From NCBI GenBank assembly GCA_964247055.1, contig OZ176051.1, forward strand, positions 6,758,001-6,822,000: a DNA stretch of 64,000 nucleotides, written 5' to 3'. This DNA is from Paragordius varius (lineage: Eukaryota; Animalia; Nematomorpha). Positions 5,492-37,776 of the stretch are shown in pieces. Each line of letters opens with the position of its first letter. Position 1 is the stretch's first letter. The position numbers and the translations under genes were made by a program. Under the pieces are notes generated by a model. The model saw nothing but the letters and a program-made list of their open reading frames with translations, made no database searches and was not told the origin of the DNA.

Positions 5492-5636
5492 AAATTATAT
5501 ATTAATATATTTCTGCAAATTTGATATAAATTATTTTTAACCATTATTTTAGCATAAAATAATTTATATCAAATTTGCAGAAATATATTAATATATAATT
5601 TACTATAAATTATTTTTAACCATTATTTTAGCATAA
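5492..5636. repeat. Perfect 46-bp inverted repeat plus 33-bp direct repeat at the 5' junction of the RTE element
   Basis: 5492-5537 is the exact reverse complement of 5556-5601 (18-nt loop); 5525-5557 is repeated directly at 5604-5636. Confidence 0.9.
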
Positions 5637-6054
5637 TCTTATTTTTTTTATCAAATTTGAGTTACATTGTAGCTAAAACGGTGTGTAAGAAAAATTAATT
5701 TTGATTTTTTAATTTTCGCGCGCGCGTTCGACCCATCTGACGCTACTTCAAAAACGAAAAATTCTTATCGTTATCTATTTATTTATTTTCAAAGTTTATT
5801 CTATCTTTTATCAGTTTTTCTCATTCATTCAAAAAATGCACGAAATTACCTTTATAATATATTCCAAATCAATATTCTTAGGATTCGTATTTTATTTTAT
5901 TTTTATTTATTGATATATATTTATGCATGTTTTTGTGTTTTTTTTATTATTATATTTTTGGTTAAAATTTTTGATTCTGTTTTAGTTGCATTTACATATT
6001 AGTTACTATATATTTTAGTGTTTATTTTCATCTATATTATTCTTCTAATTTATT

Positions 6055-6873
6055 GTGTTTTTGTTTTTTACGAGTGTTTTTTGTAAGGCGTGCAGGCCAG
6101 ACCCGGACAGTCGCTGCACGGAGGTGGCCAATAGGGATAAGGAAGGTTGTAGAATGTGTTTTGCCAGTATAAATGTTGGTTCGTTAAAAAGTAAGTTATA
6201 TGATTTAGTTGAAACTATGAGGGTAAAAGTAAATTTTTTGTGCATTCAGGAGACCAGATACCGTGGAAATGATACTAAGACGTTAGAGGGTGATTATAAA
6301 ATGTTTTATTCAGGTTCTACGGATGGTTACAGTGGGGTCGCCATAATAGTGTGCCCAAGATTTGCCAATCAAGTAATTGAGGTTAGACGTGCTGACAGTA
6401 GAATTATAAGTGTCGACCTATTGTTAAATAAGAGGGTTTTTACTATCTTTAGCGTTTATGCCCGCCAGATAGGGTTAACTAAACCGGAGAAAGATAAATT
6501 TTATGATTTGTTAGACGCAGAAATGACTTCATTAACGAAAGACAGAGAAATTATATTTTGTGGTGATTTCAATGGGCACGTGGGACAAAATAGGAGAGGT
6601 TTTGAGCCTTGGCACGGCGGAAAAGGTTACGGGGTTATAAATGAAGAAGGGGCTAGTTTATTAAGATTTGCCCAATCTTATAACTTTGCTATAACAAATA
6701 CTTTTTTTACTAAAAGGGATAGCCACTTAATTACCTACGAAAGTGGAAATAAGAAGTCACAAATCGATTATATTCTAGTACCACGAAAGTCTTTAAAGTG
6801 TGTTTTGGACTGCAAAGTGATACCTAACCTGCAGATTAGCACACAACACAATTTAATTATGTGTAAATATTGA
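6055..6873 (+). pseudogene. RTE apurinic-like endonuclease (APE) domain
   Basis: Motifs NVGSL, LCIQETR, GVAIIV, GDFNGHVG, SQIDYILV; the frame ends in a stop before the RT domain. Confidence 0.9.
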
Positions 6874-7332
6874 CAGATATACCAATAAATGCCAAAAAGC
6901 CTAAGCTTATAGCGCCGAAGGTAATTAAATGGGATTCTCTAAGAAACAGTAAAGAAAGATTTGTAGAAACGGTAGGCATACTAGACAGGAACAGTGATCC
7001 AGAAAGTGTTTGGTCTCAGGTGGCAAAAAAAATAAGAGAGGCGGGAGTTAAGGTGTGCGGAATGAAAGGTGGCAGAAACCAGGTTTATAGAGAGGCATGG
7101 CTGAAAGACGAAAAAATAATTCTGAAATCGCGAGAGAAAAGAAAAGCTTTTAAAATGTAAAGGTTTACCCACCAAGCAGAAGACAAGGAAAAATATAAAA
7201 GGATTAATAAGGAACTTAAAAGGCTTGTAAGATTGGTCAAAAAAGAAAAGACGGCATCATTGAAGAGTTAAACAGCAAGGTCTAAACAAAGTTTTTAAAA
7301 TTGCTCGACAAAGACACAGAAGAAAGCTGGAC

Positions 7333-8913
7333 TTGCCCCCTTACGCGACAGCTATTAAAGATAAAAAAGGCAAATTACTCGTTGAGAAAGCGAAAATATT
7401 GAAAAGGTGGAAATATTTCCAGGACCTTGAATTGGGCGTCAGTGAAACAAGTTTTCCCGAAACACCAGATTATAAATCTGCGCATATTGAAAGTATAACA
7501 AAAGAAGAAGTCCAGGCTGGTTTAGAAGAGATGTCAATAAATAAGGCTGCAGGTCCAGACGATATTAACATAAACTGTTGGAAAATATTGTCAAGGTATT
7601 GAATTTTTAGCGGATATTTTTAATAATGTAGTTACTACAGGTATGATACCAACCGAATGGAAGGAGAGTTTCACTGTTCCCATTTTCAAGGGTAAAGGAG
7701 ATATTAATGATTGTAATAATTACAGAGGGATAAGATTGATGTCGCATACAATGAAGTTATTTGAGGAGTACTAGAGAAAAGAATAAGTAAAATGGTTAGT
7801 ATAGAGGGTAATCAATTTGGTTTTATTCCAGGAAAATCCACCATTAATCCGATTCACACAGTAAGAAGGCTAATCGAGAAGCATATAGAAATGAAAAAGG
7901 AGTTGCATGGTATTTGTATTGATATTGAAAAGGCATTAAATAGAATACTCCGGAGCACAATATGGTGGAGTTTAAGACGGAAAAAGGTCCCTGAAAGTTA
8001 CATAAAGATTTAAAAAGCATGTACGAACCAAACCAAAATTAAAACACACCAGGGAATATCAGGTCTTATTAAAATAAACGAAGGGGTCTATCAGGGGTCT
8101 GCAATCAGCCCGTTACTATTTATAATATGCATGGACAAAATTTCAAAAGAAGTAGGGCAACATGATGGCTGGTATTTTCTTTATACAGACGACCTAATAG
8201 TGCTGTCCGACGAGTTGCATGAATTAAAAGGTGAGTAAATGGATTGATGTGTTACGACGATGCGGATTAAAAGTTAATAAAAAGAAATCGGAACTGATAA
8301 ATTTTGGCGGACAAAAACGTGAAATAGAATTAGAAGAAGGGTGGGTATTAAAAGGTCAGGAGGAATGCAAATATTTAGGAGCGATATTAGCAGCAGATGG
8401 TTCTTTAACACTTGATATTAATTTAAGAATTCGAAATAGTTGGGCAAATTATAAAAAGATCTCAAGTGTTTTGTGTGACAAAAATATTGACCTAAAAGTA
8501 AAGGGTAAGATTTACAGTGCTGTTGTACCACCAACAATGAACTCACAGACATGGGCAATAAAGAAATCAGAGGAGAGGCACTTTGAGGTTACTGAAATGA
8601 GATGCTTAGATTGATGTGCGGTGTAACGAGGAATGACAAGGTGAAGAATGTCTACATAAGAGGAAGTAAGGAAATCAAACCGGTAACGCAAAAGATGATG
8701 GTAAATCGTTTAAGATGGTTCGGACATGTTGAAAGAAGAGATAAAAATTACATTGGTAAAAAGATTGATGATTATATTGTGAAAGGCAAGAGGGGAAAAG
8801 GGCGCCCTAAAACGCGATGGATAGATACAGTTAAGAGGGACATGGCAAAACTGAACCTAAAACGCGAAGACGCCTTAGACAGGGTTCTATGGCGAAATAG
8901 TTTACGGATATGA
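7333..8913 (+). pseudogene. RTE reverse transcriptase and C-terminal domain, fragmented by frameshifts and stops
   Basis: NNYRGIRLMSHTMKLF, QFGFIPGKST, IDIEKA, GVYQGSAISPLLF, YTDDL (YADD equivalent), RLRWFGHVERR and GRPKTRW, spread over several frames. Confidence 0.9.
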
Positions 8914-9200
8914 CCGCTCGAAAGAGTGAGATCATATAATGTAATTATTATTATTATTTTAGCATAAAGTTGGCTGGTTATTGGCCTCACTTATCCCACA
9001 AATTATTTTGTTTTAGTCATTATAACTAATTAGCAGCTTTTAAAAACATTTCACTTTTTTGGATTTATTTCTCGATTAAAGCTTTAAACCCCTGAACTTT
9101 TCTGGATTGAAAGATTCTTATTTTTCCTAAAATATATGACCTGTCATTTAAAAAATAAAATTTTGATCATTATATAATATGTGAATGTATGTATAATTAC

Positions 9201-12200
9201 CGTCTATAAGAGTTTTTAGGCCTAAATACGTAAATAATTAATCATTAAAATTTATCGATTAGATTATAAAATCGTAGGAAAGTTATTTTTTTAAATTATT
9301 ATTTTTGCGCAATTTCGAATTTTTTTTATTAAATATTTAAATATTTATTCCAATTTTATTTTCAGATATTCAATTATCATTTTTATCTTTTTGCTTTTAT
9401 GCGGTGTAATGGCCTTTTTAATGCTGAAAACGGAGGGTCATTAAGATATGATAAGTAACAAACCTTCTACAAGATTATCCAAATCTAAGATATAATTTTA
9501 TATATATTATATCACTTCGTATTTGAGTCCGTAGTGCATTCCAATAGTCTATTATATGTTTGTTTTACAAATAATGGAAAAACTCGAATCTAGAGCTAAA
9601 AATGAATAGTTGTGAAACCTCCAAAAAGAGTAGTCATTCGTTCTTCTCCTAAATAAATATTATTTGTATCATCATAATATAAATCAATACCTTCAATTAT
9701 GACTAAAAAATTATGGTAAAAATAAAAATCATCATTACAGGGTACTATAATTTCTGACCCTGCATCTGCTTTTTTCAAATCCCAGGTAATATGTATAGTT
9801 TTAATTTTTGGGCCACACAATAGTTTAATAATTGCGAGTTATATGGTCCTATATATAGCTATTTTTGTCTCCTAATTTAGCATAACTTTTACCCGGTTTA
9901 TTGTTGTTTGGAGTTCGATTTTTAGAATATTAACTAGTCTTATTTAAAAGCTCTCTAATAGTAATATAAATATATAAAAAAGCAATAGTCTGGTAAAATA
10001 AAATGCTCAATTTTATTAATTAATATGAAACAACATAATGAAGTCTTACATGAGTTATATTATAATGATTTAAAGTTGTCAAATTTTAGTCGAAAATATT
10101 GTTATACTAGATTAAAATTCAAACAGGTTTGTTTACATGGAACCGTAGTTCCTAGTTTGATCCAGAGGGTAAAGATAGAAACTGGTATAAAAACATTTAT
10201 TAATTATTTTAAGCACTAGGAATCGAAACTAATCCACATACCATTTTCCCTTTTTATATAAATTAAAATTTAAAATCAAAGCATTTTTCAAGAGGTCAAT
10301 CACCAAGGTAGAACCAGTGTTTATATTTTTAATTATTGCATTCAACATAACTTAATTGCTGTATTTTTAATGTTTACTTTTTGTTTTTTTTCAGTTTCTG
10401 CCATCATATAAATGGAAGCTTGTTCTGATAAAAGCGAAGCCGGTACTCATCCCTATAATTTTCTTTTAAATTTGAACTCCCACGAAAAATACGGCTATCA
10501 GCGGGAAAGTAAAAGGGAAAAGGCCTGCGCAATAATTTAAGGTCCCAAAATTACATTTTTAAAATCTATATCAGCTTCATTTTTATACCCAAGCAAAAAA
10601 AAGGATCAAGGTTATTATATGCAGAGGGCGCCGACTTTGGTAATTTTTTGCTAGATAATCATTACAGATGTAATGTTGTATTTTTATAAGATAAATACTA
10701 TAAATTATATATACATGATTCTAGTGCATTGAAACCTAAACATGTATTTTATACTAATAAAATAACTTGCACACAAATGGTTTACGTCTATATGAAAATC
10801 ATTATCAAAAAAATACCCTCGGCAAAATCGGCCATATCTTATTGTAATGAATGTCATTTATCATATTTCAATAAAAATAATAGAAGGAATCTTACAATTG
10901 ACAAGTTGTTGATATGCTATAGATACATATAACATAGACATAAAATTATTTAACTAAAATTATATTACCATATCTCAGATGATTAACACCTAAATATGTA
11001 TGTATAATAAATGGATATAAAATATATTTGTTAATGAAATGAAGGTATGCTTGAAAAAATGGGTTCAGAATTCATAAAGGGTTAATTTATATTAGTGAGA
11101 TTATTAAGAGCCATCTACCAATCACAATATTATTTTGTTGATCAATATCATTTCGAATAATTATTATATCAGCTTTGCCAATGGGCAAACAATTGAAAAA
11201 TTTTGGTCTAAAAATTAAATGTGTAGAAAAATATTGTATTTCAATTATAAGAAATCAATTTAAAATATAATGTATCGGAAAAACATTGTTTAATCCAACT
11301 CCAAACCATTAGAACTTAATTCCCGAATTTAAACATATCTTGGGTCGTTTGGTTATTTTTTTAAAAAAATACACCTAACCAAAAACTGTTTGTCAGTATA
11401 GGTTATAACATTTAACTTAAGTAAAACGCTAAATTTTTTATTATGAAAGACGGAAAAACATACAGACAAATATTATTTTTCAAAAGACCACTCTACCTTT
11501 TTAAACTCGATATTTTTATTATAACTTATTATTTTCAATTGCAAAGTATAAAGATGTTAATTGACACATATCTATATATGATTATGTAATTATATAATTT
11601 ATACAGATATATTAGATTTAAAAAAAATAAGGTCGTCTATTATGTTACTTTTAATCTGTAATTCAATTTTTACTGTATTACAATATATATATAATAACAA
11701 ACCCAATGTAATCCCCTATTAATCTTTCAACAAAGTTTGGTTTAACTATATTAATAGCAAGAATGCCGCTGTTATTTTTATTAAGCCAGACCCTCAAGCT
11801 CAAATTATCATCTTGATAGATAAGAGTGAAAACTTATGGTTCAGGCTTAATAAAAATAATACATTATACCGAAAAAAACCCGATGATATACTTAACTTCG
11901 GGTAGGTCTATGTATCAGGATTATCATGGTTCATTTGCTTTTGACCCTTGAGATTGATGAAAGTTATTTACACTATTGTATGTGGTAAGAGCTATCGTTA
12001 AATAAGTGATATTCTCAAATCGCTAAAATGTATCATAAACTACATATAAAAAGTAAACAATATTTTTTAAAAATTAGATGGTTCGGAGAATTCCAAATTT
12101 TTCTTCGAAAATGAGCTAGCTCTTTTAAAAAAACTCAAAATTGCCTGGATTCACTGACTTAAATTTTGAATATATGATAAATTTTTATATTAACTAAAAA

Positions 12201-15200
12201 TATTTTAAGAATGATGCATATATTTTTTGAAACTTAATTTTTGGAATTTCTATGAAGACTACTTCATACTTTTTTGAGGAATGATGGAAACGGTAAATTA
12301 CCGCTCTAAGACATTATAAAAATACTTTTTGTAAATAATTCGATAATCCTTAACATTATCACCTCATATTTTGACTAAAACATTCGTCCGTGTTCAAATT
12401 TATGTTAAATTAATGTGTTTTTTATATAAAAAAAGCACCAAAATATTTTGGCAAACAAACATTTTAATAAAGATCTTGAAGGGATATGCATATCTAATTA
12501 TGTAGAAAAAGTGTTTTCATATCAAAGAACGTTTGTAAACCGTGTCCATCATGACTAAAACTAGTATGAAGTAAGCTTTATAAAATTTTATTAAATTTTT
12601 GAAAATTTAAAAATGTTTTTTAGTTGATATCGAAATTCAATATATATTTAAAATTTGTTTCGCCAATCTCGGCATTTAAGAGAACCAGCCCATTTTAGAA
12701 GCGAAAGAATTTGGTTTCGAAGCTCACATTTAAATTTTTTTTGATATTGTTTTTCCATGAAGCATTAAGATTTCATCAAAAAAATTTATTTAAAAAAACG
12801 TGCGCAAATTTTCATTTGATACGGAGCACTTACAGTAAAAACTGAATTCATACGAACACGTAAAAGACAAATTTTTTTCTAAAAGACATCCATACTTTTC
12901 AAATCTTGATTTTACAACTGATTGATTTAAATGGCAAATCGTGAAATAGAGATATACATTACTAACACAATCAATTCTATATTTAACAATTGCAACTAAA
13001 TAGCTTTTATGAGAAAAATTAAGGTTTCAAAAAGTATGGTCTTTTAGATTAATATTTTTTTTATATTTTAACGTTTTGTCCGTATAATTTCAATTTTTAC
13101 TGTACAAAAAATATCTCGTAAGGGCTAAAACCTACATGATAATCTTGATACATATTGCTATTATATTTTATCAGGTTATTTTTTATACTTCCCGTTTTCG
13201 GACGCAGTGTTATGGGGCAATTATGGAGAGCAGTGTATTGATTTCAACAAAAAAATATTTTAATTTTTATGTTGCTTTCTAGCTTCTAAAAACCTTAAAG
13301 CTAATTATATTTAAAAATATCTATATTGGTCAAAAATATGTATTGTATAAATACCCATATCGTTCATTTCTTGATCCTCTTAAAAATGTATAGTGTTATA
13401 CCTGGAGAGATGGATTCTTCCGATTCTACAATAAATTGGTATATGTTCTTTGAAGACAAAAATATTTTCTTTATTAAAATAAGTTAAGCCCTGTTGTTAA
13501 ATTACAATTAAGAGTATGAAAACTGTAAATAAACAATCTTACCCGTTTCATAAGGATTATCTATTTATATATAAAATTAATTTATAAAATTGAATAAAAT
13601 TGACTATATAAGCATTAGATTTATAATCCATACTATTAATATTTTCGAGTTCTAATTATAAAAAATAAAATTAGAATATAATATCTTTGCGGGCAAATAT
13701 AAATGCATTTGCCAAAGATATGACATGTTTTCCAAATAACCAATCATGAATATAAGTATATTAGTTTTAAAACTTTACATTTTTTCAATTTCATTTTAAT
13801 TTATAATTTGTTAAACAAATTAAGGACCATAGGAAGAGCACGCCTGAGCAGACATATGTAAACTAAACAGGCTTAAAACAAATTTATAAAATCATTGTGC
13901 TAAGTTTTTGAGCCATTTACTATATTTTTAATAAGACGGCTCTATCATAAGTCCTGAATGATTAGCCTAAACTTTGCTTTATTTCGTTTCAAAAAGCTTG
14001 TGAAATAATCAAATGATACAGTAATTTGAAGCACATCTTTACAAATAATAAGTTTAAAATTGTGCGGTGTAGCCAAATTTAAACGTTATATATATATATA
14101 TATATATATACTGTGTGCAAAAAAGAGATTTTTTAACAAAAGAAAATTTTTTTCATGAGCTAGCTTACGACCAGCGAATTCATTTGCCGTAAAAATTTTT
14201 ATTTGTTGACAACCTAGTTTGTGAAATATGAGAAAATCGAAAGGACAAAAAGTAAAAATTTAGGATAATCAAGGATAAATCAAAAAATAATGATAAAACT
14301 CAAGATATTATGGTTTATTATCATTTTAATAATTTCTTCAATATGTAAATAGCCTAAAATCATATAGTTAGGGTTTCTATAAAATTTCAAAAGATTTTTT
14401 CTTTTAACACACTTAAAAGACAAAAAATTTTTAATGAAACTATATTTAAATAATTTTATAAATTATTTACTACCAAAACTCGCTATTAAAATCATAACAT
14501 TCATATTTTATACAGTAAAAGACATATATAATAAAACCAAAATTATTGTTTTTTATTATGCATTTTTTTGCCATCTAGTTTATGAGTGTATAAAAAATTT
14601 ATACTGTTTTATTTTGGATTCTTACATGAGTGCGATTATATATAGTTTATGTAAAATAGAATTAAAAAGTGTGGAATATCAACCAACAATCCGTAAAAAT
14701 CCCAATAAAAATATTAATTTGTTATGAAACAGACTTGTTACAGAGATTTATAAGGATTGTTGGTTGATATTCCACTACTTTTAAATATTGCATAAATTAT
14801 ATAATTAATCATGTAAGAATCCAAAATAAAACAGTATAAATTTTCATACACTCATAAACTAGATGACAAAAAAATGCAAAAATAAAAAACAATATTTTTG
14901 GTTTCATTTTGATATATAAGTTTTTTTACTCTATAAATGAATGTTAAGATTTAATAATGAGTGTCGGTAGTAAATAATTAAAAAAATTATTTTAATATAA
15001 TTTCATTAATATTTTTTTAAGTGTGTTAAAATAAAAACGCCATCTTTGGGCTAAAATTTTATAGAAACCTAACTATATGATTTTAGGCTATTATATTGAA
15101 AATATATCCAAAAATGATAATAAACCATATTTCATGATTATTTTTTAATGATTATCCTTAATTTTCACTCTTTGCCCGATTTCGATCTTCTTTCAATATT

Positions 15201-18200
15201 TCAAAAACCATGTTGTCAACAAATAAAAATTTTCGCGGCAAATGAATACGCTGGTCATAAGCTATCTCATGCAAAAAAATTTTTTGCACACAATGTATAT
15301 ATATATTTATATATATCAAAAATCAAGAGCTAACTACTTTGTTAAATAAAGTCATATCTTATTATTCGAGAAAATTAAAAAATATTTCGCGACATTTAAA
15401 TTACTATTACTAGACTTAAAAATGATCATAAAGGGCCTCTAAAATAAAAATTTTAAATTTCTGACGGGTTGACCCCAAGTATATTAAAAATATCTAATGA
15501 ATTAAATTTTGATGTATATTTCTCATTAATAACTCGGAAGTTTTATGGAAGATTATCACACCTCTACGAAATTCTGAGTTTAGTCAAAGCATATTTCAAA
15601 TAAAATGTATATTATAATATAAACCAAAGTTTTAAAGCCGTATTTTATATTTTTACCACTGATTCCATCATCGATATCTTCTGTAAATAAAAATTAATTA
15701 TGATTTTACCTTCAGGTCGGACTTGACTTTGTTCAGAGTTGGGATCTAAAATATTTTAATAAAGCCAAAATGATATTCTATATTCAATTTATTTATAAAT
15801 ATTTAAATATAAATATACCGGAAACGGGAGCTGTATATATATATATAATTAAAAAAAGTTCCAGGGAATAATTTTAATAATATTTTCTAAATTTATATAC
15901 GGTTAGTTTCAGATGAAGAAAATGAAGATAACGAACTATCTGTAAATAATAGATATTAATACATCACAATAAATACCGTCAGAATCTTCAACATTGGATA
16001 AAGGATCAGTTGATAATTGTTGATCTAATATAAATTTATTCCCAACTAATTGAACAACAATCGAGATAAATGACATAATCAAACAACACAATAATATTTA
16101 AATAAACACAAAACATAAGTAAAGAAGGATTTTAGTTAAGAAATTAATATTCATTAAACAAAATGACTAAAACTTTGAAATTTGGTAGACACTAATAAAA
16201 TATAAATAAAAACTCCTAAGGTTCTACTTTATAATTTTAAAAGTCTATGGAATCAGGATTAGAGATAAATTCAAGAGATTTATAAAATTTTCCATATGAG
16301 TATTTAAAATATACCAATATAACTAAAACACCAAGTTGTCTAAAAACGCTTAGTTTGACTATCTTATTAAATGGCATTCAAAACATGTGAATACATGTTC
16401 ACTACCTAAGAAAAGGAAAACGTTCAATCTAAGAACATTTCGAAATTTAGTTTTATTATAAATAGAGCCATCTATACATTAAAGCATTAATGTTTTAGTA
16501 TCTAGCTAATTTTATTTAAACTATTTTATTTTTCCCTCTTAAGTAGCCAAAGGTTTAATTTATAAAAGGTTTAAACACTTAAAATGATATTTTAATTAAT
16601 ATTTCTTTACATTTTACAACATATTTGTATTTTGGACGTTTAACTTATAAAGTAGAAGATTGAATCGCAAGCAAAATTTTATAATTTCCTATAAGCTATT
16701 TGTAAAGTTTTAGCATAATATAAGTTTTTGAATTTTTATTTCTTCTATATGGCGTATGGCCTCTGAATTTTAGGTCAAAGCCCATCATCGATTACATTTA
16801 AAATGTGAATCCCACCAAATATGACACATTTTATAATATAACTTATTTTCAATACGGGAGGAGCTGGTAAATATTATTAAATATCCGGAATATAAAAAAA
16901 TACTAAAAAATTAGATACCTTTTATGCAAACGATTTCGCCTCTATTCTCGTTTTTGTTACAAAATAATTAACGATGAGAAGATAAGTAAAAACTCTTTCT
17001 AACCATTACGCTTATTTATCATCATTCTCGATGACTGTCATTTTTAAAGCATAACTCCCTATCTTTCAACACACGTTAATAATGTGAGGAAATTTGCCAC
17101 TTTTGCGGCAAAATGAGAGAGAGTAATTTATAAATTAATTTAAGTATTTAAATTACTGTTCATTATTTCTTTCAATGGATTTTCAGTTAAGTATATAAGA
17201 AAAACTATTTCATTTATTTGGGGTGTCTAACACTCAAGGTGGATTGATTATTGAAACTCTATTTATTATAATTTTATCTGTTTGCATAATCCTAAATAAA
17301 AGGCTATTTGTTTCAAAGAAATTTATCAATGCTTAATAAAAAATAACCTGTATTCGCGGGTGTACTTGGTTGAGAGTGGGCAGCGCTTGCAGGTATTACT
17401 GGGGCAACATTTGTAGCCGAAGAAGCTAAAGATCCTAATTAATGAATATTCGGTTTTTATTTTTAAGATTTGCAATAAATCATGTGAATATAATATAATT
17501 AACCATGAATGTTTTATAATTAATCATTGCTTATATATGTAAACTTACCAAGAGTTGCTAAAATAAACAGTTAACCTTATAATACCTAGAGATCCAACTG
17601 TGGCTAAAGTTAAAGATAGAGAGAAATATATTTGCAACAGATTCCCAATTTAGATCAACTTAATTTTATAATATTTTAATATGCACTATACAAACAAAAA
17701 GGGCCTTAATATACCATTTTTGAGTCAAAAGCAACATTTTTTCATGTAAACGCAACATTTTTAAACCAAACGCAACATTTATATCAACATTTTTTTAATT
17801 GTCTGAATTGCCTTTGGTTAAATTTGTCCTTTTGACTAATAATTATAAACGCGTAAATATAGAAACGCCCTTTTAAACCCCTGGCCGGTAAATTAACTGG
17901 TGTGAATTTTTTTTGTCATATGCAGTATGATAATTTACGATTTTTTTAAAAAAAATAATAAATAAAGCAAATAGTTTATCTAAAGATACTATTTTTGTTC
18001 AACTAAAATCTTTTTAAAAATTTACCAAATATTTAAGCTTTTATTTTAGCGTTAAAATGCTAATTGTATTTGAAAAAAATAAGAGATTTAATATTTTGTA
18101 TTATTCTTTGATCTGCATTTAAAAATAGGATATAGCTACATCTTAAGTCTCATTTTTAATATTCGAAATATTCCTTAAATTAACTATTATGGCCGAGCGG

Positions 18201-20224
18201 GTATTTTGTTATCGTAAAAAATATAACATTTCTGAAGCTACCTGCTAATCCAATGGCTAAATTAAATTATTTGAATGTAAAATTAAGCAAATCATTTTAA
18301 AATTCTGTTTTTATAGCATTATGCAAGTGAAGTCAGATATTAAATTTATATTTCATTTTTTGCTAGATTCTACTAAAATAATGAAACACTTAAAAAATAG
18401 CTTAGGATTTGAGAATTAGTAAGGATCCCACTACTGACTTTAAACTCCTTACTATAAAAATAGAATTGTTGCGGTTTAAGTTTTTCTATCTTATAATTCA
18501 ATAAAATTAAAGGTAAAATTTAACCCATCGATTTTTAATGCACATATTAATTTTTTATAATTTATCATGTAACTTGGTTTGGATCTGATATATTGTTAAC
18601 GTATAACATTTTTTTTATAATTTGCTATTTATTTGATAACTAAATATATAATATTAATTTTAATATTTGAATAAAGTGTTTTGAAACTTGGATGAAATTA
18701 AGATATTTAAGAAATCTATAAATAAATAAATAGAATATGTTCTTTTATATCCAATCAGATAAAAAATATTTAGATATGGCGGTTACAGACTAAAATTTGC
18801 AATTATGACCAAAGAATACACAAGATCAGAACAGAATATTTTTCAAATATCTGAAAAATTTCTATTTTAATTAAGTTAAAATGTTTATAAATATCTTGGT
18901 TATTTATTTAGATTTTTAGATCATATTCATTGATCTATTATAATACTCTCCGATATGTTTCACATGTTGATAGGGTTTGATATGCTGACATATATAAATA
19001 GGCGTTTTGATCATATGAATAATCAATTATTACTTTTTGCAAAGGCTTTATAATTTATGAAACTGTGCTTGGTGATGTTCCCAGTCCTGTTAGATGATAG
19101 ATCCGAGCCAGATAAAAGCTCCACTTCAGGAATCTTAATTTTTATATAATAAAAAAACAAAAAAGTTTTTAAGTCAAATCTATAAAATTTTAGATGGTCG
19201 CCCAAATGTGGATTGAAGTTTTAAAAAAGTAGGTAAATTAAAACAATTGTTCACCAATTTTTTTTCACATATATATTTATTATTACTATGCTTTATATTG
19301 TGAGCCTGATGTTTGGACACTCACTATTACTACACATTACGATTCAATCCAAAGCTGTGAAAATGCAATATAGTACAAAATCCTACGGTTATTGATTCAT
19401 TTTATTTAAGTATTTGTCAGAGCCATGGAAGATTTTATGGCAAATTTTGGCTTATTTAATAGAGAGATCTTATGATAAAATCATAAAATTAATAAATAAT
19501 TAAACTTATTTTACCAAAAACATTTAATCATATATAAAAAAATGTTGCTATAGCTGGTATTTTGAAAGTAACTAGCGATAATTTATGTTAAATTACCGTG
19601 TTACAAATTTTTGTAATAATCATACCCCGGATATATCTAAAAGTATTAAGTTTTTGCTAAAATTATACTTTTAATACGAAAGAAGATCAGTAAGGGTGAA
19701 TTTTCTAACATATTAGTTATTTAAATACCCATTTGTAAGCTGTAGTTACGAACTTAATTATAAAGTTGTTTCACTTACTTATTTCCCTGGCTAATTTTTA
19801 AAATAATAAAATTTTAAATTTTTGTGACTTTCTGACACTGGTATTTGAATTGGCAAATTACAACAGCAAATGATAAAATTATGAAATTTATTTTAAAAAA
19901 TAGATATAATTTCATTGTTTATTATTACAAGTTTTTTAAAATTTAAGCCAACTTAATGATAATTATTATTGGCAATTACATATTTTATTAACACTATTTT
20001 TATATTCATAGAAATATTTACCATCAAAATGATATTCCGTAATGTTGGCGATACCTATATACAAATGTGAATAATAGATATGTTATAAAACTTTATGCTA
20101 AAAATAAAATTTTAACATTTATAATTAATCCAATATCCATAAATATAAAAAAAACTAATGTACACAAGGTAGAGAAAATATATTTTGATAAATTTGCAAT
20201 TAGATTTGTTATTAGCTGTGTCAT
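9201..20224 (-). CDS. Micro-exon gene 2 (orphan, paralogue of gene 1); at least 27 exons, 3' end not resolved
   Basis: Hand-built open chain, all AG/GT bounded: 20224-20164 (ATG, MTQLITNLIANLSKYIFSTL), 20054-20022, 19790-19779, 19752-19729, 19704-19678, 19636-19626, 19133-19034, 18485-18390, 18256-18242, 17603-17586, 17557-17549, 17434-17348, 16024-15977, 15939-15901, 15830-15819, 15745-15710, 15680-15657, 13425-13402, 13378-13355, 10181-10137, 9765-9739, 9702-9691, 9648-9619, 9595-9584, 9548-9516, 9484-9464, 9221-9201. Nearly all are symmetric phase 1; several exon lengths and peptides match gene 1. Individual exons are uncertain. Confidence 0.65.
12833..13102. mobile_element. Tc1/mariner-like MITE
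   Basis: Imperfect TIRs cagtaaaaactgaattcatacg and cgtataatttcaatttttactg, flanked by TA on both sides; related sequence near 11450-11680 and 21595-21848. Confidence 0.7.
14111..15295. mobile_element. About 1.2-kb imperfect palindrome (foldback-type element) in (TA)n, inside an intron of micro-exon gene 2
   Basis: The arms are diverged reverse complements along their whole length, centred near 14725 (e.g. ggaatatcaaccaacaatcc / ggattgttggttgatattcc; tgtgtgcaaaaa / tttttgcacaca at the ends); TA runs flank both sides. Confidence 0.8.
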
Positions 20225-25212: not shown

Positions 25213-28200
25213 TCAGATGGATGTTGTGTAGCCACTTTTAGTAGAATTTACTATTATGGGATTGGACCATTTGTATTTACCTAATCTTTTTATTCAATTT
25301 AATTGTAGAATTTATCTAACTTTATTCTGTGAATTGGTTAATTTGACATGTCAATTTGCCTGGATTTTGCTAGCAAGTCTCTCTTATTGGGCTTTACGAT
25401 TACTTATTGTTATCTTCGCCATATCTGGCATAATTGGATCGCTTGGGGTATATGCAGAGCTTGTGCAGCCGCCCGGATCTATCACACTATACATAAGCCC
25501 CTTTTAGATTTTTAATACTTTGGCTCTTAGCTTGTTTAGTATCTTATTTAATGCCTAGAATTTTGTTATTCATGCATGGAATATTACTTGTATCGACTTG
25601 TTCGTTTGAATATTTAAACATATGTACACGAGGAATGATTGTTATTTTTAAATTAAACACAAATTTAAAAATTAAATTTCGGAAAAATCTTATTGGTGGC
25701 CTCAATTTTCTTTTTTGTTTTGGCCTTTCCATGCCATTAGGTATCAGAAAATGCAAAAATAATGGGGTGGTGCAAAACCTTGTTGATTAGTGTTATTTAT
25801 TCAAGTATGCTTACGTATTTCCTCTTCTATAATCATATAATAATGGTTTAAAATTCAAAACATTCTGTTTTTGTAATTCGATTAGTAATACAGTGTTAAA
25901 ATCACTGCGATCCCCTGCAGGCAGCCGGTTCTGCCTTAGGCACCCTTATTTAACGATGAAAGAGTAAAAAACTTTTTTTGCCCGTTTGCAGCATATAATT
26001 ATATGATTACACATAAAATCAATGCACAACACATAATATTAAACAAATCTGGTTATATTATAATGTTGGTTTTAAATCCCTAAATTAGAATAATGATATA
26101 AATCAATACTTACGAATCATTTCTAAATCTAAAATAAAATAATACAAATTGTTGGGTGTAGATATTTTTAATTGGGTAAGTTGTTTAGGGAAATGTTTTT
26201 AAAATGAGCGAAAATGTGATATTATAGAGCATAACGAAATTAATTTACAAGCGGTAAATTTTTAATGATGCTTATAATTTTGAAGTGTCAATATACTGGA
26301 TTATATATTATATATTTAATCAGTTAATTCCTTATTATATGTTAGCGTAATTAAATAATGACAAATTATTCACTTTTATTGATTGTATTATTATATAAAA
26401 AAATTTATTTCGATGTTTTTGTTTGTGTTTAATTATTTATAAATTATTATAACTATTTAATAACGATTTTATAACCATGAATGTGGTGACAGTTTAATAA
26501 AAGGGTATTATAATTTATATCTAAAAAATTTTTTGATATATTTTTATTGAAAAATGACATAGTCACGCCTTCCTTTTTTACAAATGTTTTTATACATAAC
26601 AGATGCATTTGGTTTAATAATGGAATAACAGTCAACTGTGTTTATAACCGCTGACCATTTATAAACTGCCAATTAAATATATACACTTATTAACATCTAT
26701 TGTCCGTAAAATTTGATTTTGTGTTAAAAGTAACTTCTTAATTAAAGGATTAATCGAACATATGATTATCTTAATTCTAAATTTAACAATTTCAACCCCA
26801 GAGTTAGAGATCTATGTTATTTATCAATATAATAAATAATTACAATCAGTGCGATCCAAATCTAGATATATATAGTTTATTAAAATAGGTAGCAAAACGA
26901 AGCCACTTTGGAGCTTTGGCGTTCTAATTTTTTTAGTAAGAGTTGTTGATAGGATGAGCCTACGTTATATGTGAGCTCTTAATTATCATTAGTGAGTTTT
27001 TTATTTGGGATGATTAAAGATCTATGAAAATGAGCCTTAGCCATATTTATCCGTGTGAGCTGGGTCAATTAAATTGATTCAAGTGATTTAAATGGCTTTT
27101 GGGACCCATATCTCAAAGTTGCCCCGAAAAATATTAATATTTTAAACCATATAATTAAAAATTAAAAGCAATATGGCTTATAAATCATATTTTAAATCAT
27201 GGCTCTCAGTTCCTCAAGAGGTCTTCCAAAATTACAGTTATTTTTACAATATTGAGGGGTTGATTATTTTATTTGGAAGATATATGCATAAGTTAAAAAT
27301 TAGATTATTAATCCTATGCAAGTTTAATTTTTTTTTTCCCTATTAGCAAACTAATCTCATAACTGAATGTATTAGCCCAAATATCAATATTGCTAGTATA
27401 TTTCGCTTATGATGTTTTCCATTTTATTATCTTAAACAACCATAAAACACTCCTAAATTATTTTTTCCAAAATTTGTGTTAATAAAATCATAATATACGT
27501 AAAATTTTTATTACCTTCGATTGTTATCATATCTTCTATAATTTAAATGACAAGTTAAAAAAATATAATCCAAGTAGCTTTTGGTAAATAACCATACAAG
27601 CAAAAGAGTTTATCTTTGTGCCATATCTTATTTACAATACACGTTTTATAAATTAGTAAAAAACAACATGTACGGCTTCAGGACCTTACTAAAGATCCGG
27701 TTAACCTTTTATTAGATTCAAAAATATTAACGGATTAATCCTATGCATAATTTAGGTCTGGTATTATTGAATAAAATAGAACCACCGACTATTGGTTTAA
27801 TTATCTATATTTATATCTATATTTAGAAGGTATTAGGATTTTTTGAAGAGATATTTAATCTTAATGTGCATATACCTATTTCTCAGTTCTCTTGACCCAG
27901 TAAATTAAAACAATTGTAGTAAAAACAATTAATGAAATAACATCTTTAAATATTGGGGTTTTCAAAATACACAATATCATTTTAATTATACGATATCTAT
28001 CTCAATCTTTAACTTGTAATAAAGATTTACCGTATATTCTTTCTTCCAACGCTAAACGGATAAAATGTTAATTAGGTGTAAATAAACCATTATTATACTT
28101 GCGGCAGTGTTTGATAATTCTTCATTTGAATCATATGCAGTAAAAAATAAAATTATTGAGACCAAACACGTAAAAAAGAATAAGATTAGTATTTATGTCG

Positions 28201-31200
28201 TGAATAATGAAGGAAATAAAAATAAATATATTAAAAAGTTTAATTTTCGCTTAATGGCATCATCAGGAGTTAAAAAAAATTAAATAAGATTTAACAAAGA
28301 AATAAATTAAATGAAATTAAATGTGTGACCAATCAATAATTATAAAATTTTATCATTGTTGGACCTTATTTTAAGTTTTTTCTTTTAACAACTCCTGATG
28401 ATGCCATTGGGCGAAAATTTGAGTCTGTGATAAATTTATTTTTATTTCCTTCATTATTCACGACGTTAATACGGATCTTATTTAACAACCGTTCGTCGTC
28501 ACCCACACAATTTTTTTTAAAAAAGAATATTTTTTAAGAAAAACATATGTTTTAACAAATTTTTTCATATACGATAAAAGATTATATTTGTGATATATGA
28601 AATTAGTTTGTTACCAATTCATATCTCTATTTCCCGATTCGCAATCATAAATAATATATTATATAATGTATTTCAATAATATACCTTCAACCATTGTCTT
28701 GATATCTATATAATTTCAATAAAAAAAATTTTCATGTACCATTTATATGGTTTCCTAAGCCATCCATGAAATCTTTCAATTTAAATAATAATATTCACCA
28801 ATGTGGCCGATTGCTATAAAATAAATTATAGAATATTTTACATTAATGCAAGCTTAAATTAAAATTTAAGCCCGAGTGACCAAATTTAGAATTGATATTG
28901 TGCGAGGCATACTACCAAAAAATAATTGTAAAAAAATTCGAAGCTTTTAGTGGTCAATTTTATAAATAAAAAACGTCAACATGTATGACCCAGAACCATA
29001 ATTTAAATATTTTATCAAAAATATTTTTAGCAATGGCCCAACTTTCGAAATGTTCTTTTTGATACAAAAAATTCTTTTTAAAAAAGGAAAATCGTAAATT
29101 CTTGTCTCCAGCCCTCTGAATCCCATAGTTTTTCTCTTTTATTATAAATAGTCAATACAACAGCCAAATAAATGTATATTATGGTTGAAAAATATATTTT
29201 TGCAAAGTTTCCACCCGAATCTAAAAAAATTAAATTCTTAATTTTATCTAGAGATAATATTAATGATTTTCCAAACAGTAGTTGCTTACTGCTTTAGTGC
29301 TTGAGTTAAAAACTGCCCCAAAATGAAATCGCGTATAAAATTAAAATGTTATAGTGTAATAATTTTAATTCAAAAAATAAATGTATAATTGGGAAGATTT
29401 TTTTTGATAGACCTAAACAAGCAAATATTAGTTTGAGCTGAGAGTAATCCGATTTTTTTAATTACATAAACTTTAAAAAGAAACTTTAATTGTGGCATTA
29501 ATTTACTCGTTTTATGTATATATTTTAACCCTGGGACAAAAACACCCATGACAAAAATATGAAACGAGCTAAATCATTTTATTACAATTATATTTATAAA
29601 ATACCTAAATTTCATAATAATTATTATATTTGAGAAATTAAATAATTTAAAAAAATTTTAAAATATATAGTCAAATTATATTGAAGTTGCGCTTGATTTA
29701 GGGTTGAAATTCAATTTTTCGATTAAACTTGACCAGAAAAATAAAATATGAGTAAGTTGAATTTATGGAAAATATTAAACGAAAGTTAAATCATTCAGCT
29801 GTTTTTATGACTCGAATGGGTAATACTTTGAAAAATAAATTTAATAACTCGGGTTTTTTTGACATTTAATAAAGCGTACAAAACGAAAAAAAATCAGATT
29901 TTAAAATATTAAAATTCCATAAATATTTATTAAAATGTATATGAGAATGTAAAAGGAAAAATCTAGCTGGAGTGTTTCGTGTGTAAATAAGCTTAGTTTT
30001 TCCATTCTGCCAACATAATTATTGGCAATACAATGAATTACAAGCCTAGGTACCTGAGATGGAAATATATATATCTATATATATATATGCTATTTTAAAA
30101 TAACATAGCAAAATTTTATATTCTCAAGCTTTTTTTTACAAAATGATACATTTCGCTCAAGTTCTTAGAGGGTTAAGCTTTAAAATACAAAAAGTTAAGT
30201 AGTTAGTCACTAATAAACACTAGTTCATTTTTTTCACTCTTTTTTTGATGGAGATACTTTTATTGAAATTTTAAATAAAATCATATTATTTCAGGATGAT
30301 TTCCTTTAGATGTAAAAAATATTAAGTTTTTTGAACAAGCGTGGGTTATATGCACTTAATATTTTCCACTGCAAAACATCCAATTTGGTTATAAAATATT
30401 TTAAAACCACTTCATTCATTATGTCATTTTATTTTCTTGATATCCAACATAATTCTAAAATAAGCTTGAGAGCTGTTCAGATTTTATTATGCCAATAAAA
30501 AATTATAAAACCCATATTTTGAAGGTACATTACATATATCGTATAAAAACCTTTTTAGTAAAAATATGATAATTTTCCCAGCTTACCGTCGTAAATGGAT
30601 TCAATTCTGTAAACTCCATTAATTTCTAGGACTAACAATAATTAAAATTATAATTTATTTATTATAAAGTTATATATTAAGTATTTTTCGACTTCGAACC
30701 TGAACCATTTTTAATTTTTGGTTTATTTTTTGACCGCCTTGGTTTTATTTTGTTGTGAAAACCAAATCGGTTCGGTTTCAACCTTACAAAAAACTCATGG
30801 TCCCGGTTCCGTTTTTCCTGGCCTTGTTTGAAGTCGTCCATTTATTTGTATTTAAAGAGATACATGTTTCGAATCGTTCAACAGCTAAATTATTTTATGT
30901 GGATTATTTTTTTATATCAATGATACCCCATTCTAATGATATTAAACCTGTCGTAATTTTAAATATAATTAATGAATGATACTATCTCGCAAAGCCACAG
31001 ATGCTACAAATTATTCTAATTTTTACAATGAATTATTTCCTCCACCACTAGCAAAATTATAATCATGTTACTTGATGATAAATGTTCAATAGCTAAATAA
31101 ATAATAAAATATATACATTGTCGTTAAATTAAACCATAGAATTAAAAATACAAATAATTATAATCTTTTTATCCGAAATGGTACAGGGCTCAAACACCAT

Positions 31201-34200
31201 GAAGAATCTTGGATATTAAAGCTAAAAAGCCTATTTAACATAAAGTAATTTTTTAAATGAATTTTAAGTGTTTTTGTGGTTTAGATAATTTTGGTATGTT
31301 AATAGAAAATTTCTTCAAAATATGAAACAATGAATAATCGTGTGATTCATATCATTAAATACTATATATTTAACCGCACCTGTACAGCAAAGTCAAACAT
31401 TTTAGTTTGATGTGATTTTGAATTAACCAAATATAATTTTAAATTTATAATAAATCTTTAAAAATTGGCTAATAGTCCAAAAGATATATAACTAATTCAC
31501 ACATATTAATACACAAAATAATAAAATATTTCATGGAATAGGAAATTAGAAAATAGTACTAGACTAGTTTCGAATTCTCAAATAGGAATCCACTATAAAA
31601 CTGATTATATGAGTGTGTGCAAAATCTGTTATACAACTATAAAATTATTTAAAATACTTTAAAAATATTATATAAGGGAGTAGCAATGGTTTGTAAGTTA
31701 GAAAATTAATTAATATTTACTATATGATGGTGCCAAAATTATGTTAGCAAACCATGCAAGATCTCTTATGTAAATCTTATAGTTGTATATCAGATGTAGC
31801 CATTCATATAATCAGTTTGATAATGATCCTTTTTAAGAATTCGAAACTAGTCTCTGACATTTGATAAATTGTCAATTCCAATAAATATTTTATTATTTTA
31901 TACCTTTCGCAAATAAAATTTATTAATTAGAAGTTTTTAATTTATTTTCCTTTGATTTGTAGTACCTTATTAATTTTATATAACCAGGCATAAAAAATAT
32001 CTATTTAAAAATATTACCCAATGAGTTGATTAAATTATATTCTAAATTATATCGATTCGAAATACCTCGGGAACTCATTGATGAAATGGATTCATCTAAA
32101 AAAGGGGATATCAATTTGTAAAACGTTCTAATATTAAAAAAATGCAAAAATGAGTTTGCCTCCAAATTAATATGTCGCTATATTTCTTATATTAGTTCAT
32201 TATTCTATTTGTTTATAGTTGTAATTCATCATAAATTAAACGTTATTTTATTCTAGTAAATAAATGATTTTTCCAATATTTAGAATTGGATCAAATTCAA
32301 ACCTAAAAGAAGTTAATCATATTAAGGGTTTTATTCGCATATTTGTTAATGAAGTTGGTTTTGTAAAATTTAATCGGGATTAAAATAGATAGAGCCACGT
32401 TCTACATTATTATTGATAGATTAATACTGTAATAATCATATCAATAGTAGGTTAGCTAAATTAATATTTAACGAAACACAGAAACGCATATTAGCACTTA
32501 TTAATAAAATGTGATTATTAGTTTTCTATTTATATCTTCAATTCTTTGACTTATCAAAACTTTAATACGCGATCGGTTAAATATTAAACCTTTAAAAATA
32601 AATTTAATAAATGAATTTTTTTGCGATTTCTTCATAACATCATTTTAAATTATTTTTATAATTATAACCAGCATTTTCCATTTTTATAAATATATAGATT
32701 ACCAGAGTTTGGGGATATAGGTCTGTCAGCTATACAAATGAATTAATTTGTATTTTTAATATTTTAGCTTATAAACATAAAACAATATATATATTAAACA
32801 AAGATGAGACAAGATGTTGTCGAATTGTCCTTTAAGTTTAAAATAAATTTAAAAATAATCATAGGTGACTCTAACATATTTATTGATTTAACCAAGTGGA
32901 CCCTCAAATAAAATATTTTTTAAATACTACAAAAAAATTTTTAATTATTAAATAAATATGTAAAAAGAGGTGTGATATAAGCGTCAGGAGGTCTTTTTTG
33001 CAAAATTATTAATTCCTAATTAAACCTTCTTAATTGGGAATATTAACTAATAAATTTAAACATCATAAATTAAAAATTAAATCAATTAAAACGTAAAAAT
33101 ATAAAGATAAATATTTTTTAAAAGGAAACCATGCTTTTTAATCTTTTATTTTTCCAATATTTGTAAGAATAAATGATTATGTTAACAATATTATCTTTCA
33201 TATTTAAAGCATTAAAGTCAAATTTAATAAGTAGAGCTGTGTTTTGGGAAAAATATTTTTCATATATTTATTTTTCCCTATGATTTCTTTTTTATTGTAT
33301 CTTAGAAATCTATGGGCCAGGATGTGACTGTTAAATGATTATTTGATATTGTTTTAGTTAACACCATTTATAAGCTTAGCCCCAAAGTATCGAAAAAATT
33401 ACCATTTGGAATGTTATTCGGTGAATTTGCTGGAGCTAAATGATAATAAACACACATTGTACGTAATCAAGATATTCAATTAAAAATTATCTGAGAGAAA
33501 AATGTATCAGGATATCAATAGTTAGAGCTTATTACTAAAATGCCAGTACAATGTATATATAAGTTTAGGGGTGTCTAACATGCAGTAGGCCTATATTACA
33601 GTCTCATACCTTGGGCAAAAAAATACAATAAAAAAATTATTTTTGTGGACTTTATTTTTTGAAAAAAATGGCATTTTACGCGGGTAGCGGGTAAAAAGAG
33701 GGCCTAAATCAAAAAAGTGAGTCGACTATGTTCGGCGCGATCAAAAATAAGTAAACAAAAATCATATTTGAAATTGAATGGTCCAACACGTTCTCCGGAA
33801 AATTGTTGCAACCTGTTTTTTACACGGGGTAGGCCCGAACTGGGGGCCTAATTACAAAAAGGGCGAAGCTATTGTCGGACATTTATTAATGATTATATTT
33901 TTTCGATTGGATTTGAATGGGTTCACCGGTTTTCGGGAAACAGATGACAAAGTTACATAAGGAATCAGTTTTTAGCGGGTAGTCCTTACCCAGCAGCTAT
34001 CATCTAAGAAACGGTGGACTAAAATTTTTGCCCTTTTAACAGGGAATACGTGGAATCCATATTGAATTTTTACGATTCGATTAAAAAAATATTTTTGTGG
34101 ACTTTGTTTTTTGAAAAAGGTGGCATTTTACGGGGGGAGCGGGTAAAAAGAGGGCCTAAGTTAAAAAAGCGAGACGACTATGTTCGCAATCAAAAATAAC

Positions 34201-37200: not shown

Positions 37201-37776
37201 CTGGGCAAGATTTTAACATAAATAATAATAAATGCGGAATCGACAGAGTAGGGTTTTTACGCTCCCCTTTTTTGCTATATCTGATAATCCTTTTAGAGAT
37301 TTCGACTGTCCTGTAATACTATTTTTTTGCTATTCCAATAAATTTATTTTAAATGAGAACAATGTTTTAATTTATTTAATATAATTTTCAAAACTGTAGT
37401 ATATTTACAAAATTGAGCATAGGATATAATTCCAAAACAACATGTGAAAAGGTCATGAAGTGTTAAAATCTTTTTTATAATAAATTTATTGCAAAAAAAG
37501 GTAATATCCATTTTTACATATATGTTAAGTTATAGTTATGCCCAGAACCAAAACGTGCGAAATATTGAAAATATTATATATATCAAACACAATTTATGTA
37601 ATATATTTTTAAGTAAATACTTTTAGCTAAAGATCGATAGTTAACAGACATGTGTTGTAGATATTTTGTTGCATTTTTTGTTTTGTTTTGGATAGCAACT
37701 AAAACCAATTCTTGATTCTGATTAACATTAAATAGTATTAAAAATTAAAATTATGAGACTTAACAATAATCTGGTA

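Follow-up and report, generated by a model that had tools for sequence, protein, structure and literature searches.

Results

Two chains of predicted micro-exons on one strand

We analyzed a 64,000-nucleotide (nt) stretch of the genome of the nematomorph Paragordius varius (GenBank assembly GCA_964247055.1, contig OZ176051.1, positions 6,758,001 to 6,822,000 of the forward strand), hereafter called the window, which has a G+C content of 25% across its whole length and lies inside a 110.6-Mb assembly. The minus strand of the window carries two chains of very small predicted exons, gene A (38541-28031) and gene B (20224-9201), which extend to 27876 and 9065, respectively, when their candidate last exons are included, and which are separated by about 7.6 kb. 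The two chains are colinear homologues with shared intron positions, a coding-type pattern of substitution and a common heptad register. Judged from the sequence, A and B are probably (roughly two chances in three) intact tandem paralogues on one strand that arose by an ancient duplication.

For exon calling, all AG...GT-bounded open segments in phase 1 were listed for both regions. The working models contain 25 exons and 811 nt in each gene, these equal totals being partly an accident of exon choice. The 24 internal exons of each gene measure 9-90 nt, and all of them are divisible by three and symmetric, with phase 1 on both sides, that is, they start at codon position 2. All predicted introns of both models (48/48) are of the GT...AG type, mostly gta/gtt...ttag, and ordinary introns of 0.1-2.4 kb are mixed with micro-introns of 23-58 nt, which make up 10-11 of the 24 introns per gene. 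The predicted exons are listed below; KD19 values refer to hydropathy.

Gene B, minus strand
20164-20224 (-): exon B1, 61 nt, with ATG and a weakly hydrophobic N-terminus, MTQLITNLIANLSKYIFSTL, KD19 peak 1.32; positional homologue of A1
20022-20054 (-): exon B2, 33 nt, IANITEYHFD, with an ANI motif; the corresponding A2 has 45 nt
19034-19123 (-): exon B3, 90 nt, two NxT sequons, ending in INYKAFAK; 10 residues invariant with respect to A3
18242-18256 (-): exon B4, 15 nt, IGLA; 13/15 nt the same as in A4
17586-17603 (-): exon B5, 18 nt, TVGSL; found blind as the partner of A5 and followed by a 28-nt micro-intron
17549-17557 (-): exon B6, 9 nt, TL
17348-17434 (-): exon B7, 87 nt, GC 0.51
15977-16024 (-): exon B8, 48 nt, provisional, from intrinsic signals only
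15901-15939 (-): exon B9, 39 nt, SSLSSFSSSETN
15710-15745 (-): exon B10, 36 nt, ending in RPE
15657-15680 (-): exon B11, 24 nt, provisional, preceded by a 29-nt intron
13543-13560 (-): exon B12, 18 nt, provisional
13402-13425 (-): exon B13, 24 nt, SEESISP, with ESIS common to A15
13355-13378 (-): exon B14, 24 nt, provisional, preceded by a 23-nt intron
10989-10969, 10916-10896, 10837-10817, 10787-10767 and 10735-10715 (-): exons B15 to B19, five 21-nt exons of one heptad each, with introns of 29-58 nt
10137-10181 (-): exon B20, 45 nt, weak, without similarity to A21
9619-9768 (-): exons B21 and B22, 30+30 nt, or alternatively one open exon of 150 nt
9516-9548 (-): exon B23, 33 nt, YWNALRTQIR
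9464-9484 (-): exon B24, 21 nt, LDNLVE
9201-9221 (-): exon B25, 21 nt, LKTLID
9065-9126 (-): candidate last exon, KIRIFQSRKVQGFKALIEK followed by a stop codon, with AATAAA at the stop

Gene A, minus strand
38478-38541 (-): exon A1, 64 nt, signal-peptide-like, MLTNNVIKTTLVWIVVLIPFM, KD19 1.83
38325-38369 (-): exon A2, 45 nt, SKNMANIASKSHQQ
37621-37698 (-): exon A3, 78 nt (90 nt if the weaker acceptor at 37710 is used), containing two NxT sequons
36584-36570, 36438-36421, 36394-36386 and 36324-36238 (-): exons A4 to A7, 15, 18, 9 and 87 nt, a 26-nt intron separating A5 from A6
35616-35832 (-): exons A8 to A11, 27, 33, 39 (SLSSFSSS) and 30 nt, with introns of 37, 27 and 24 nt
34630-34665 (-): exon A12, 36 nt, ending in VPE
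33435-33403, 32729-32703 and 32095-32066 (-): exons A13 to A15, 33, 27 and 30 nt, Ser/Pro-rich linker, provisional
30864-31092 (-): exons A16 to A20, five 21-nt heptad exons in 229 nt, with introns of 24, 23, 35 and 42 nt
30587-30631 (-): exon A21, 45 nt, weak
28813-28799 (provisional), 28772-28740, 28705-28685 and 28051-28031 (-): exons A22 to A25, the last three of 33, 21 and 21 nt
27876-27943 (-): candidate last exon, DVISLIVFTTIVLIYWVKRTEK followed by a stop codon, membrane-anchor-like, with background GC

The peptides quoted in a preliminary description of the locus all lie on the minus strand where it had placed them, between AG acceptors and GT donors. The paired features that it had reported were also recovered, including first exons of 61 and 64 nt, the 15/18/9/87-nt series in both genes, the 39-nt SLSSFSSS exons, the 36-nt exons ending in PE and the 33/21/21-nt series. 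Other details had to be amended. The peptide pair NRTGNITK and NKTKNATK is present, with B3 measuring 90 nt from an internal acceptor at 19123, the only acceptor with which it is phase-consistent, and A3 measuring 78 nt (or 90 nt from its weaker acceptor). In addition, the run of 21-nt exons comprises five, not four, exons per gene.

Similarity of the two chains exceeds chance

We compared the curated exons of one gene with colinear, equal-length, AG/GT-bounded segments in the region of the other, scored with BLOSUM62. We used 47 control strands, drawn from elsewhere in the window, from the opposite strands and from 20 randomly chosen genome segments of 10 kb. The exons of A scored 132 on the B region compared with 48±9 on the controls (maximum 66, z = 8.9), and the exons of B scored 168 on the A region compared with 50±10 (maximum 76, z = 11.2). 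In both cases the traceback returned the proposed exon partners. The curated exon sets were partly picked with the partner gene in view, which counts against this test, but the objection is removed by an unbiased test in which all candidate segments of one region were compared with all those of the other, again colinear, of the same length and AG/GT-bounded. Unmasked, A×B scored 195, compared with 98±19 (maximum 135, z = 5.1) for B against 45 control strands. When a dispersed repeat in intron 12 of A, which also has matches in several controls, was masked, the A×B score was 184 compared with 84±16 (maximum 115, z = 6.2, 45 control strands). The A×B score was reached by none of the 45 controls. 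Chance is thus excluded as the source of the similarity between the A and B chains.

A chain test without splice bounds failed to discriminate (z = 1.3 and 3.1), and plain blastn of A against B was dominated by AT-rich noise, its only colinear match (17489-17631 against 36326-36465) falling at exons 5-6.

Exon lengths point in the same direction. The longest common subsequence of the two exon-length series is 15, compared with 9.5±1.1 and a maximum of 14 in 20,000 permutations; with runs of equal-length exons collapsed, p was 0.0007. Moreover, for a 19-nt pattern consisting of the 15-nt exon and its splice sites, A and B are the only exact matches in the 110.6-Mb genome.

At the protein level, the spliced translations of A and B scored 155 by Smith-Waterman alignment compared with 40.7±7 for shuffles (z = 16), and 79 of 242 columns of their global alignment are identical (~30% amino-acid identity). 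When the proteins were aligned from their sequences, with intron positions not used, introns coincided at 12 of 24 positions. The models share 15 same-length exon pairs (429 nt in total), and their first introns are nearly equal in length (108 nt in A and 109 nt in B). These data agree with the proposal of a tandem paralogue with a conserved exon layout.

Substitution pattern

In the 15 same-length pairs, nucleotide identity at codon positions 1, 2 and 3 is 0.40, 0.48 and 0.34, compared with 0.25, 0.27 and 0.31 predicted from composition alone. Conservation is thus seen at the first two codon positions, with the third at background level, and the pattern reads as that of old coding sequence under purifying selection. 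Position-3 identity at the composition level means that synonymous divergence (dS) is saturated (NG86 ~2.3), and therefore the ratio of nonsynonymous to synonymous divergence (dN/dS) is untrustworthy, so that the per-exon dN/dS estimates suggested in the preliminary description would not be meaningful. The same saturation takes away the basis of its claim of rapid protein divergence, as the two copies may simply be old.

Predicted protein product

Local translation predicts a product of ~270-290 amino acids. In A as in B, the N-terminus and the TIGL... stretch show hydropathy peaks. The N-terminus is signal-peptide-like by hydropathy only, convincingly so in A (KD19 1.83) and weakly in B (1.32). 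Exon 3 of each gene follows with two NxT sequons for putative N-glycosylation, which stand at aligned positions in A and B. The 15-, 18- and 9-nt exons together with the start of the 87-nt exon encode a Gly/Ala-rich hydrophobic segment, TIGL[SA]A..G..ATLG, with a hydropathy of 1.63 in A and 1.34 in B, which is probably one membrane span. An acidic Ser/Pro-rich stretch, presumably a disordered linker, lies between this segment and the heptad region.

The heptad region includes a run of five 21-nt exons per gene, after which a 45-nt exon comes. Of the fourteen 21-nt exons of both genes, 13 have a strongly hydrophobic residue at heptad position 2 and 13 have one at position 5, compared with 2/14 and 0/14 at positions 3 and 4, respectively, and residue counts give the hydrophobic a/d spacing (3,4) over consecutive heptads. 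The C-terminal part would thus form a coiled coil in which each 21-nt exon contributes one heptad in register. Taken together, these features suggest a secreted or type-I membrane glycoprotein that would self-associate via its heptad region.

Predicted micro-introns and gene ends

The 18- and 9-nt exons are separated by only 26 nt in A and 28 nt in B, and introns of this size are plausible in this genome because a conserved nucleotidyltransferase gene in the same window needs one of 22 nt. In this TENT4/PAPD5-like gene, a GT..AG intron at 54523-54544 (+) splits the catalytic motif, and its removal gives FGSFKTGLYLPFSDIDVV, which we take to be the nucleotidyltransferase catalytic motif. Some of the micro-introns of A and B could also be retained in frame. 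Introns 9, 10 and 16 of A are open and a multiple of three in length, and a single open frame of 56 codons (35614-35781, minus strand) runs through exons A9 to A11 and the 27- and 24-nt introns between them. Similarly, B21 and B22 lie in a single open frame of 80 codons (9599-9838, minus strand), in which intron retention would keep the frame.

Downstream of the two genes, a search for matching 3' exons found none, the sole match being RTE-derived. The preliminary description had expected the missing 3' end of B beyond an RTE element; no membrane-anchor exon for B was found there. The features concerned are as follows.

~5600-8960 (+): RTE-like retrotransposon with broken open reading frames (6055-6873, 8231-8614 and 8602-8913) and an (ATT)n-type tail, which ends ~100 nt past the candidate stop codon of B
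26736-26695: RTE-related fragment downstream of gene A, resembling 6823-6782

Repeats and neighbouring features

Several introns of A and B carry repeats, and the remainder of the window holds a further gene and a run of N. Mitochondrial COX1 and a COX1-like fragment were also recorded elsewhere in the assembly.

14090-15316: foldback element of ~1.2 kb in intron 11 of B, with nested inverted repeats, arms of <=90 nt that are 80-88% complementary, and (TA)n flanks
17706-17798: short tandem repeat in intron 4 of B, with units of ~40 nt containing AAAAATGTTGCGTTT; the AAAAATGTTGCGTTT repeat family is dispersed, with >100 matches on all large contigs, often as tandem arrays
33560-34520: GC-richer dispersed repeat, two copies in tandem within intron 12 of A, present in at least 5 of the 20 random control loci; this repeat inflates naive similarity tests
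36870-37500: dispersed repeat within intron 3 of A, matched at least 40 times across the genome at 68-86% identity
59885-61189 (-): two exons of a CBP20-like (nuclear cap-binding protein subunit 2) RRM gene, with a ~900-nt intron between them, identified by eye only
63250-63449: run of 200 N, possibly an assembly gap
contig 44, 7480-8820: mitochondrial COX1, in which TGA is read as sense six times
C1:10612280-10612597: COX1-like fragment with stops, which looks like a nuclear copy of mitochondrial DNA

Discussion

What keeps the exon lengths

Exon lengths are not conserved evenly along the two genes. They are identical in the Gly/Ala-rich hydrophobic segment and in the heptad repeats, and they differ only in exons 1-3 and in the acidic Ser/Pro-rich linker, where exon numbers differ too. 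Constraint at the protein level would account for this pattern, and selection on exon size is not needed. In such a scenario, intron positions would have been passed down from the ancestral copy, and only length changes in multiples of three would have survived. Selection would have removed indels from the membrane-like and heptad parts, since any such change would upset the length of a helix or its register, and the disordered linker would have changed by resizing, gaining or losing whole symmetric exons.

The preliminary description had instead suggested selection on exon size and phase. This alternative holds that exon size itself is selected, either since a spliceosome coping with introns of 22-40 nt and exons of 9-21 nt may be tied to fixed exon lengths or since the exons may serve as interchangeable in-frame cassettes, while the encoded peptides drift. 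Several exons invite such a view. The 87-nt exons A7 and B7, rightly described earlier as sharing almost no residues (4/28 in common), are equal in length though they are unalignable at every offset. The 39-nt exons A10 and B9 are equal in length despite a 19-nt identical core that is offset by one codon (3 nt), and a 90-nt reading of exon 3 is possible in A as well as in B, even though the two differ by an internal indel of three residues. In addition, every internal exon is symmetric, and nucleotide conservation rises above the saturated background in two exons (13/15 nt in the 15-nt exon and the 19-nt block of the 39-nt exon), which could represent splicing signals. The question rests on only two or three exons, however, and 9 of the 24 internal exons either are of unequal length in the two genes or cannot be paired with an exon of the same size. 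The conserved lengths fall in those parts of the protein that are expected to resist indels, any frame-preserving change keeps phase automatically, and the Ser-codon run of the 39-nt exon is prone to slippage. On balance, we regard selection on exon size as unlikely.

Are the two chains working genes?

A further alternative is that the chains are not working genes, being either decayed or never-expressed duplicates, or partly artefacts of AG...GT choice in AT-rich DNA. A number of observations lean this way or weigh against intact tandem paralogues. Besides the 87-nt pair, the 45-nt exons A21 and B20 are unalignable. Splicing B21 and B22 as 30+30 nt creates a stop at their junction, and therefore that part of the B model may be wrong or may be read through as one 150-nt exon. 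The N-terminus of B is weakly hydrophobic (KD19 1.32), the 3' ends of both models are guesses, and many unmatched exons are based on intrinsic signals alone. GC islands are a poor exon marker here, touched by only 11-13 of the 25 exons per gene. The RTE-like element lying ~100 nt past the candidate stop of B also fits decay.

Searches for transcripts and relatives belong on the same side. The sequencing runs found to contain the locus are all DNA, with none on record as RNA. Four putative RNA contig sets under the same species label gave only two spurious pieces of 21-24 nt when compared with positions 14225-20224; these sets are small and their life stage is not given, and the result speaks neither for nor against expression. 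A phmmer search with exon B3 (33 amino acids) of 1.84 billion representative proteins returned 0 matches, and no self-match either. No third family member emerged when the genome was searched with DNA, protein, profile and pattern queries. DNA searches with each exon-rich half found intronic repeats only, and neither exon B3, used as a protein query, nor a profile of the exon-3 alignment matched anything besides A and B. The 15-nt-exon pattern with 2 mismatches had three matches in the genome, which is at control level. No match was found to Pfam by seven single exons or to Rfam by the whole window. As far as these comparisons reach, the gene appears to be restricted to its lineage.

Set against this, ~24 open exons in phase have been kept in both copies despite saturated synonymous sites, the codon-position pattern and the heptad register are typical of selected coding sequence, and the unbiased chain test excludes chance. 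We consequently hold it improbable that the chains are decayed or artefactual, and intact tandem paralogues are preferred. That A and B are instead halves of one long gene with an internal duplication, the last A exons being spliced to exon B2, is very improbable: the shared strand and phase-1 junctions would let A25 join B2 in frame, and the last exon of A is only a candidate, but B opens with an ATG exon that is the positional homologue of A1, followed by a first intron of near-identical length (109 vs 108 nt), and the ~7.6 kb between the chains holds no further matching exons.

Comparison with other micro-exon genes

The micro-exon genes (MEGs) of schistosomes carry the bulk of their coding sequence in very short internal exons of 6-81 bp, mostly multiples of three, set between long introns of 100-5000 bp (PMC10526429). 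Genes A and B resemble them in having ten to twenty or more tiny internal exons, mostly multiples of three (9-90 nt in A and B), little sequence conservation between family members, and tandem duplicates with RTE-type elements nearby (PMC10526429 for MEGs). The N-terminal signal-peptide exon of MEGs may have its counterparts in A1 and B1, judged from hydropathy (1.83 and 1.32, respectively). In contrast to the long introns of MEGs, 10-11 of the 24 introns per gene in A and B are only 23-58 nt, and the predicted product is longer, at ~270-290 amino acids, with a segment resembling a membrane span and a tail of heptad repeats. MEGs vary their proteins by skipping exons and are expressed in glands or at the surface of the parasite, and the likeness of A and B to them seen here is one of gene structure.

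The match with the bicycle genes of aphids, reportedly treated by Korgaonkar et al. in 2021, is closer. Both groups share a large number of exceptionally short internal exons that begin at codon position 2, and in both, structure has outlasted sequence, which was the very point of the preliminary description. The N-terminal signal sequence of bicycle genes may also have a counterpart in A and B. In bicycle genes, gene structure is better conserved than sequence, and internal exons nearly all start at codon position 2 (Stern and Han 2022, PMC9168663). The published structure-only classifier for bicycle genes gave ~14.8 for both the A and B models (probability ~1.0, cut-off 0.72), although it was trained on an aphid genome and says nothing on homology elsewhere. 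Bicycle genes form a large family of sternorrhynchan insects that is expressed in the salivary gland. Unlike bicycle genes, A and B lack CYC motifs (A has no Cys, and B has two, neither in C-Y-C), they have two detectable members rather than hundreds, and they have micro-introns, which do not characterize bicycle genes. Membership of A and B in either the schistosome MEGs or the aphid bicycle genes is thus not supported.

A and B might alternatively form a micro-exon gene class of their own, independent of fluke MEGs and bicycle genes, in which 9-45-nt exons alternate with 23-42-nt introns, each heptad has one exon, and exon length is under selection. We put this forward tentatively and think it rather doubtful in its full form. 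Within it, the splicing system could measure exon size, or different combinations of heptad exons could be left out, giving variants of a surface or secreted protein. If the splicing proposed here is true, the dense alternation of 21-nt exons with 23-42-nt introns would severely challenge current models of how exons and introns are defined, and in the heptad array, with its one exon per heptad, the periodicity of a protein would be plainly mirrored in the structure of its gene. Genes of this type will escape standard gene predictors, and a paralogue-chain test of the kind used here could find them without RNA. Moreover, A and B would then add a third independent case, next to those of flukes (MEGs) and aphids (bicycle genes), in which genes for secreted proteins are assembled from symmetric micro-exons, and this architecture would seem less a curiosity than a solution at which evolution can arrive repeatedly.

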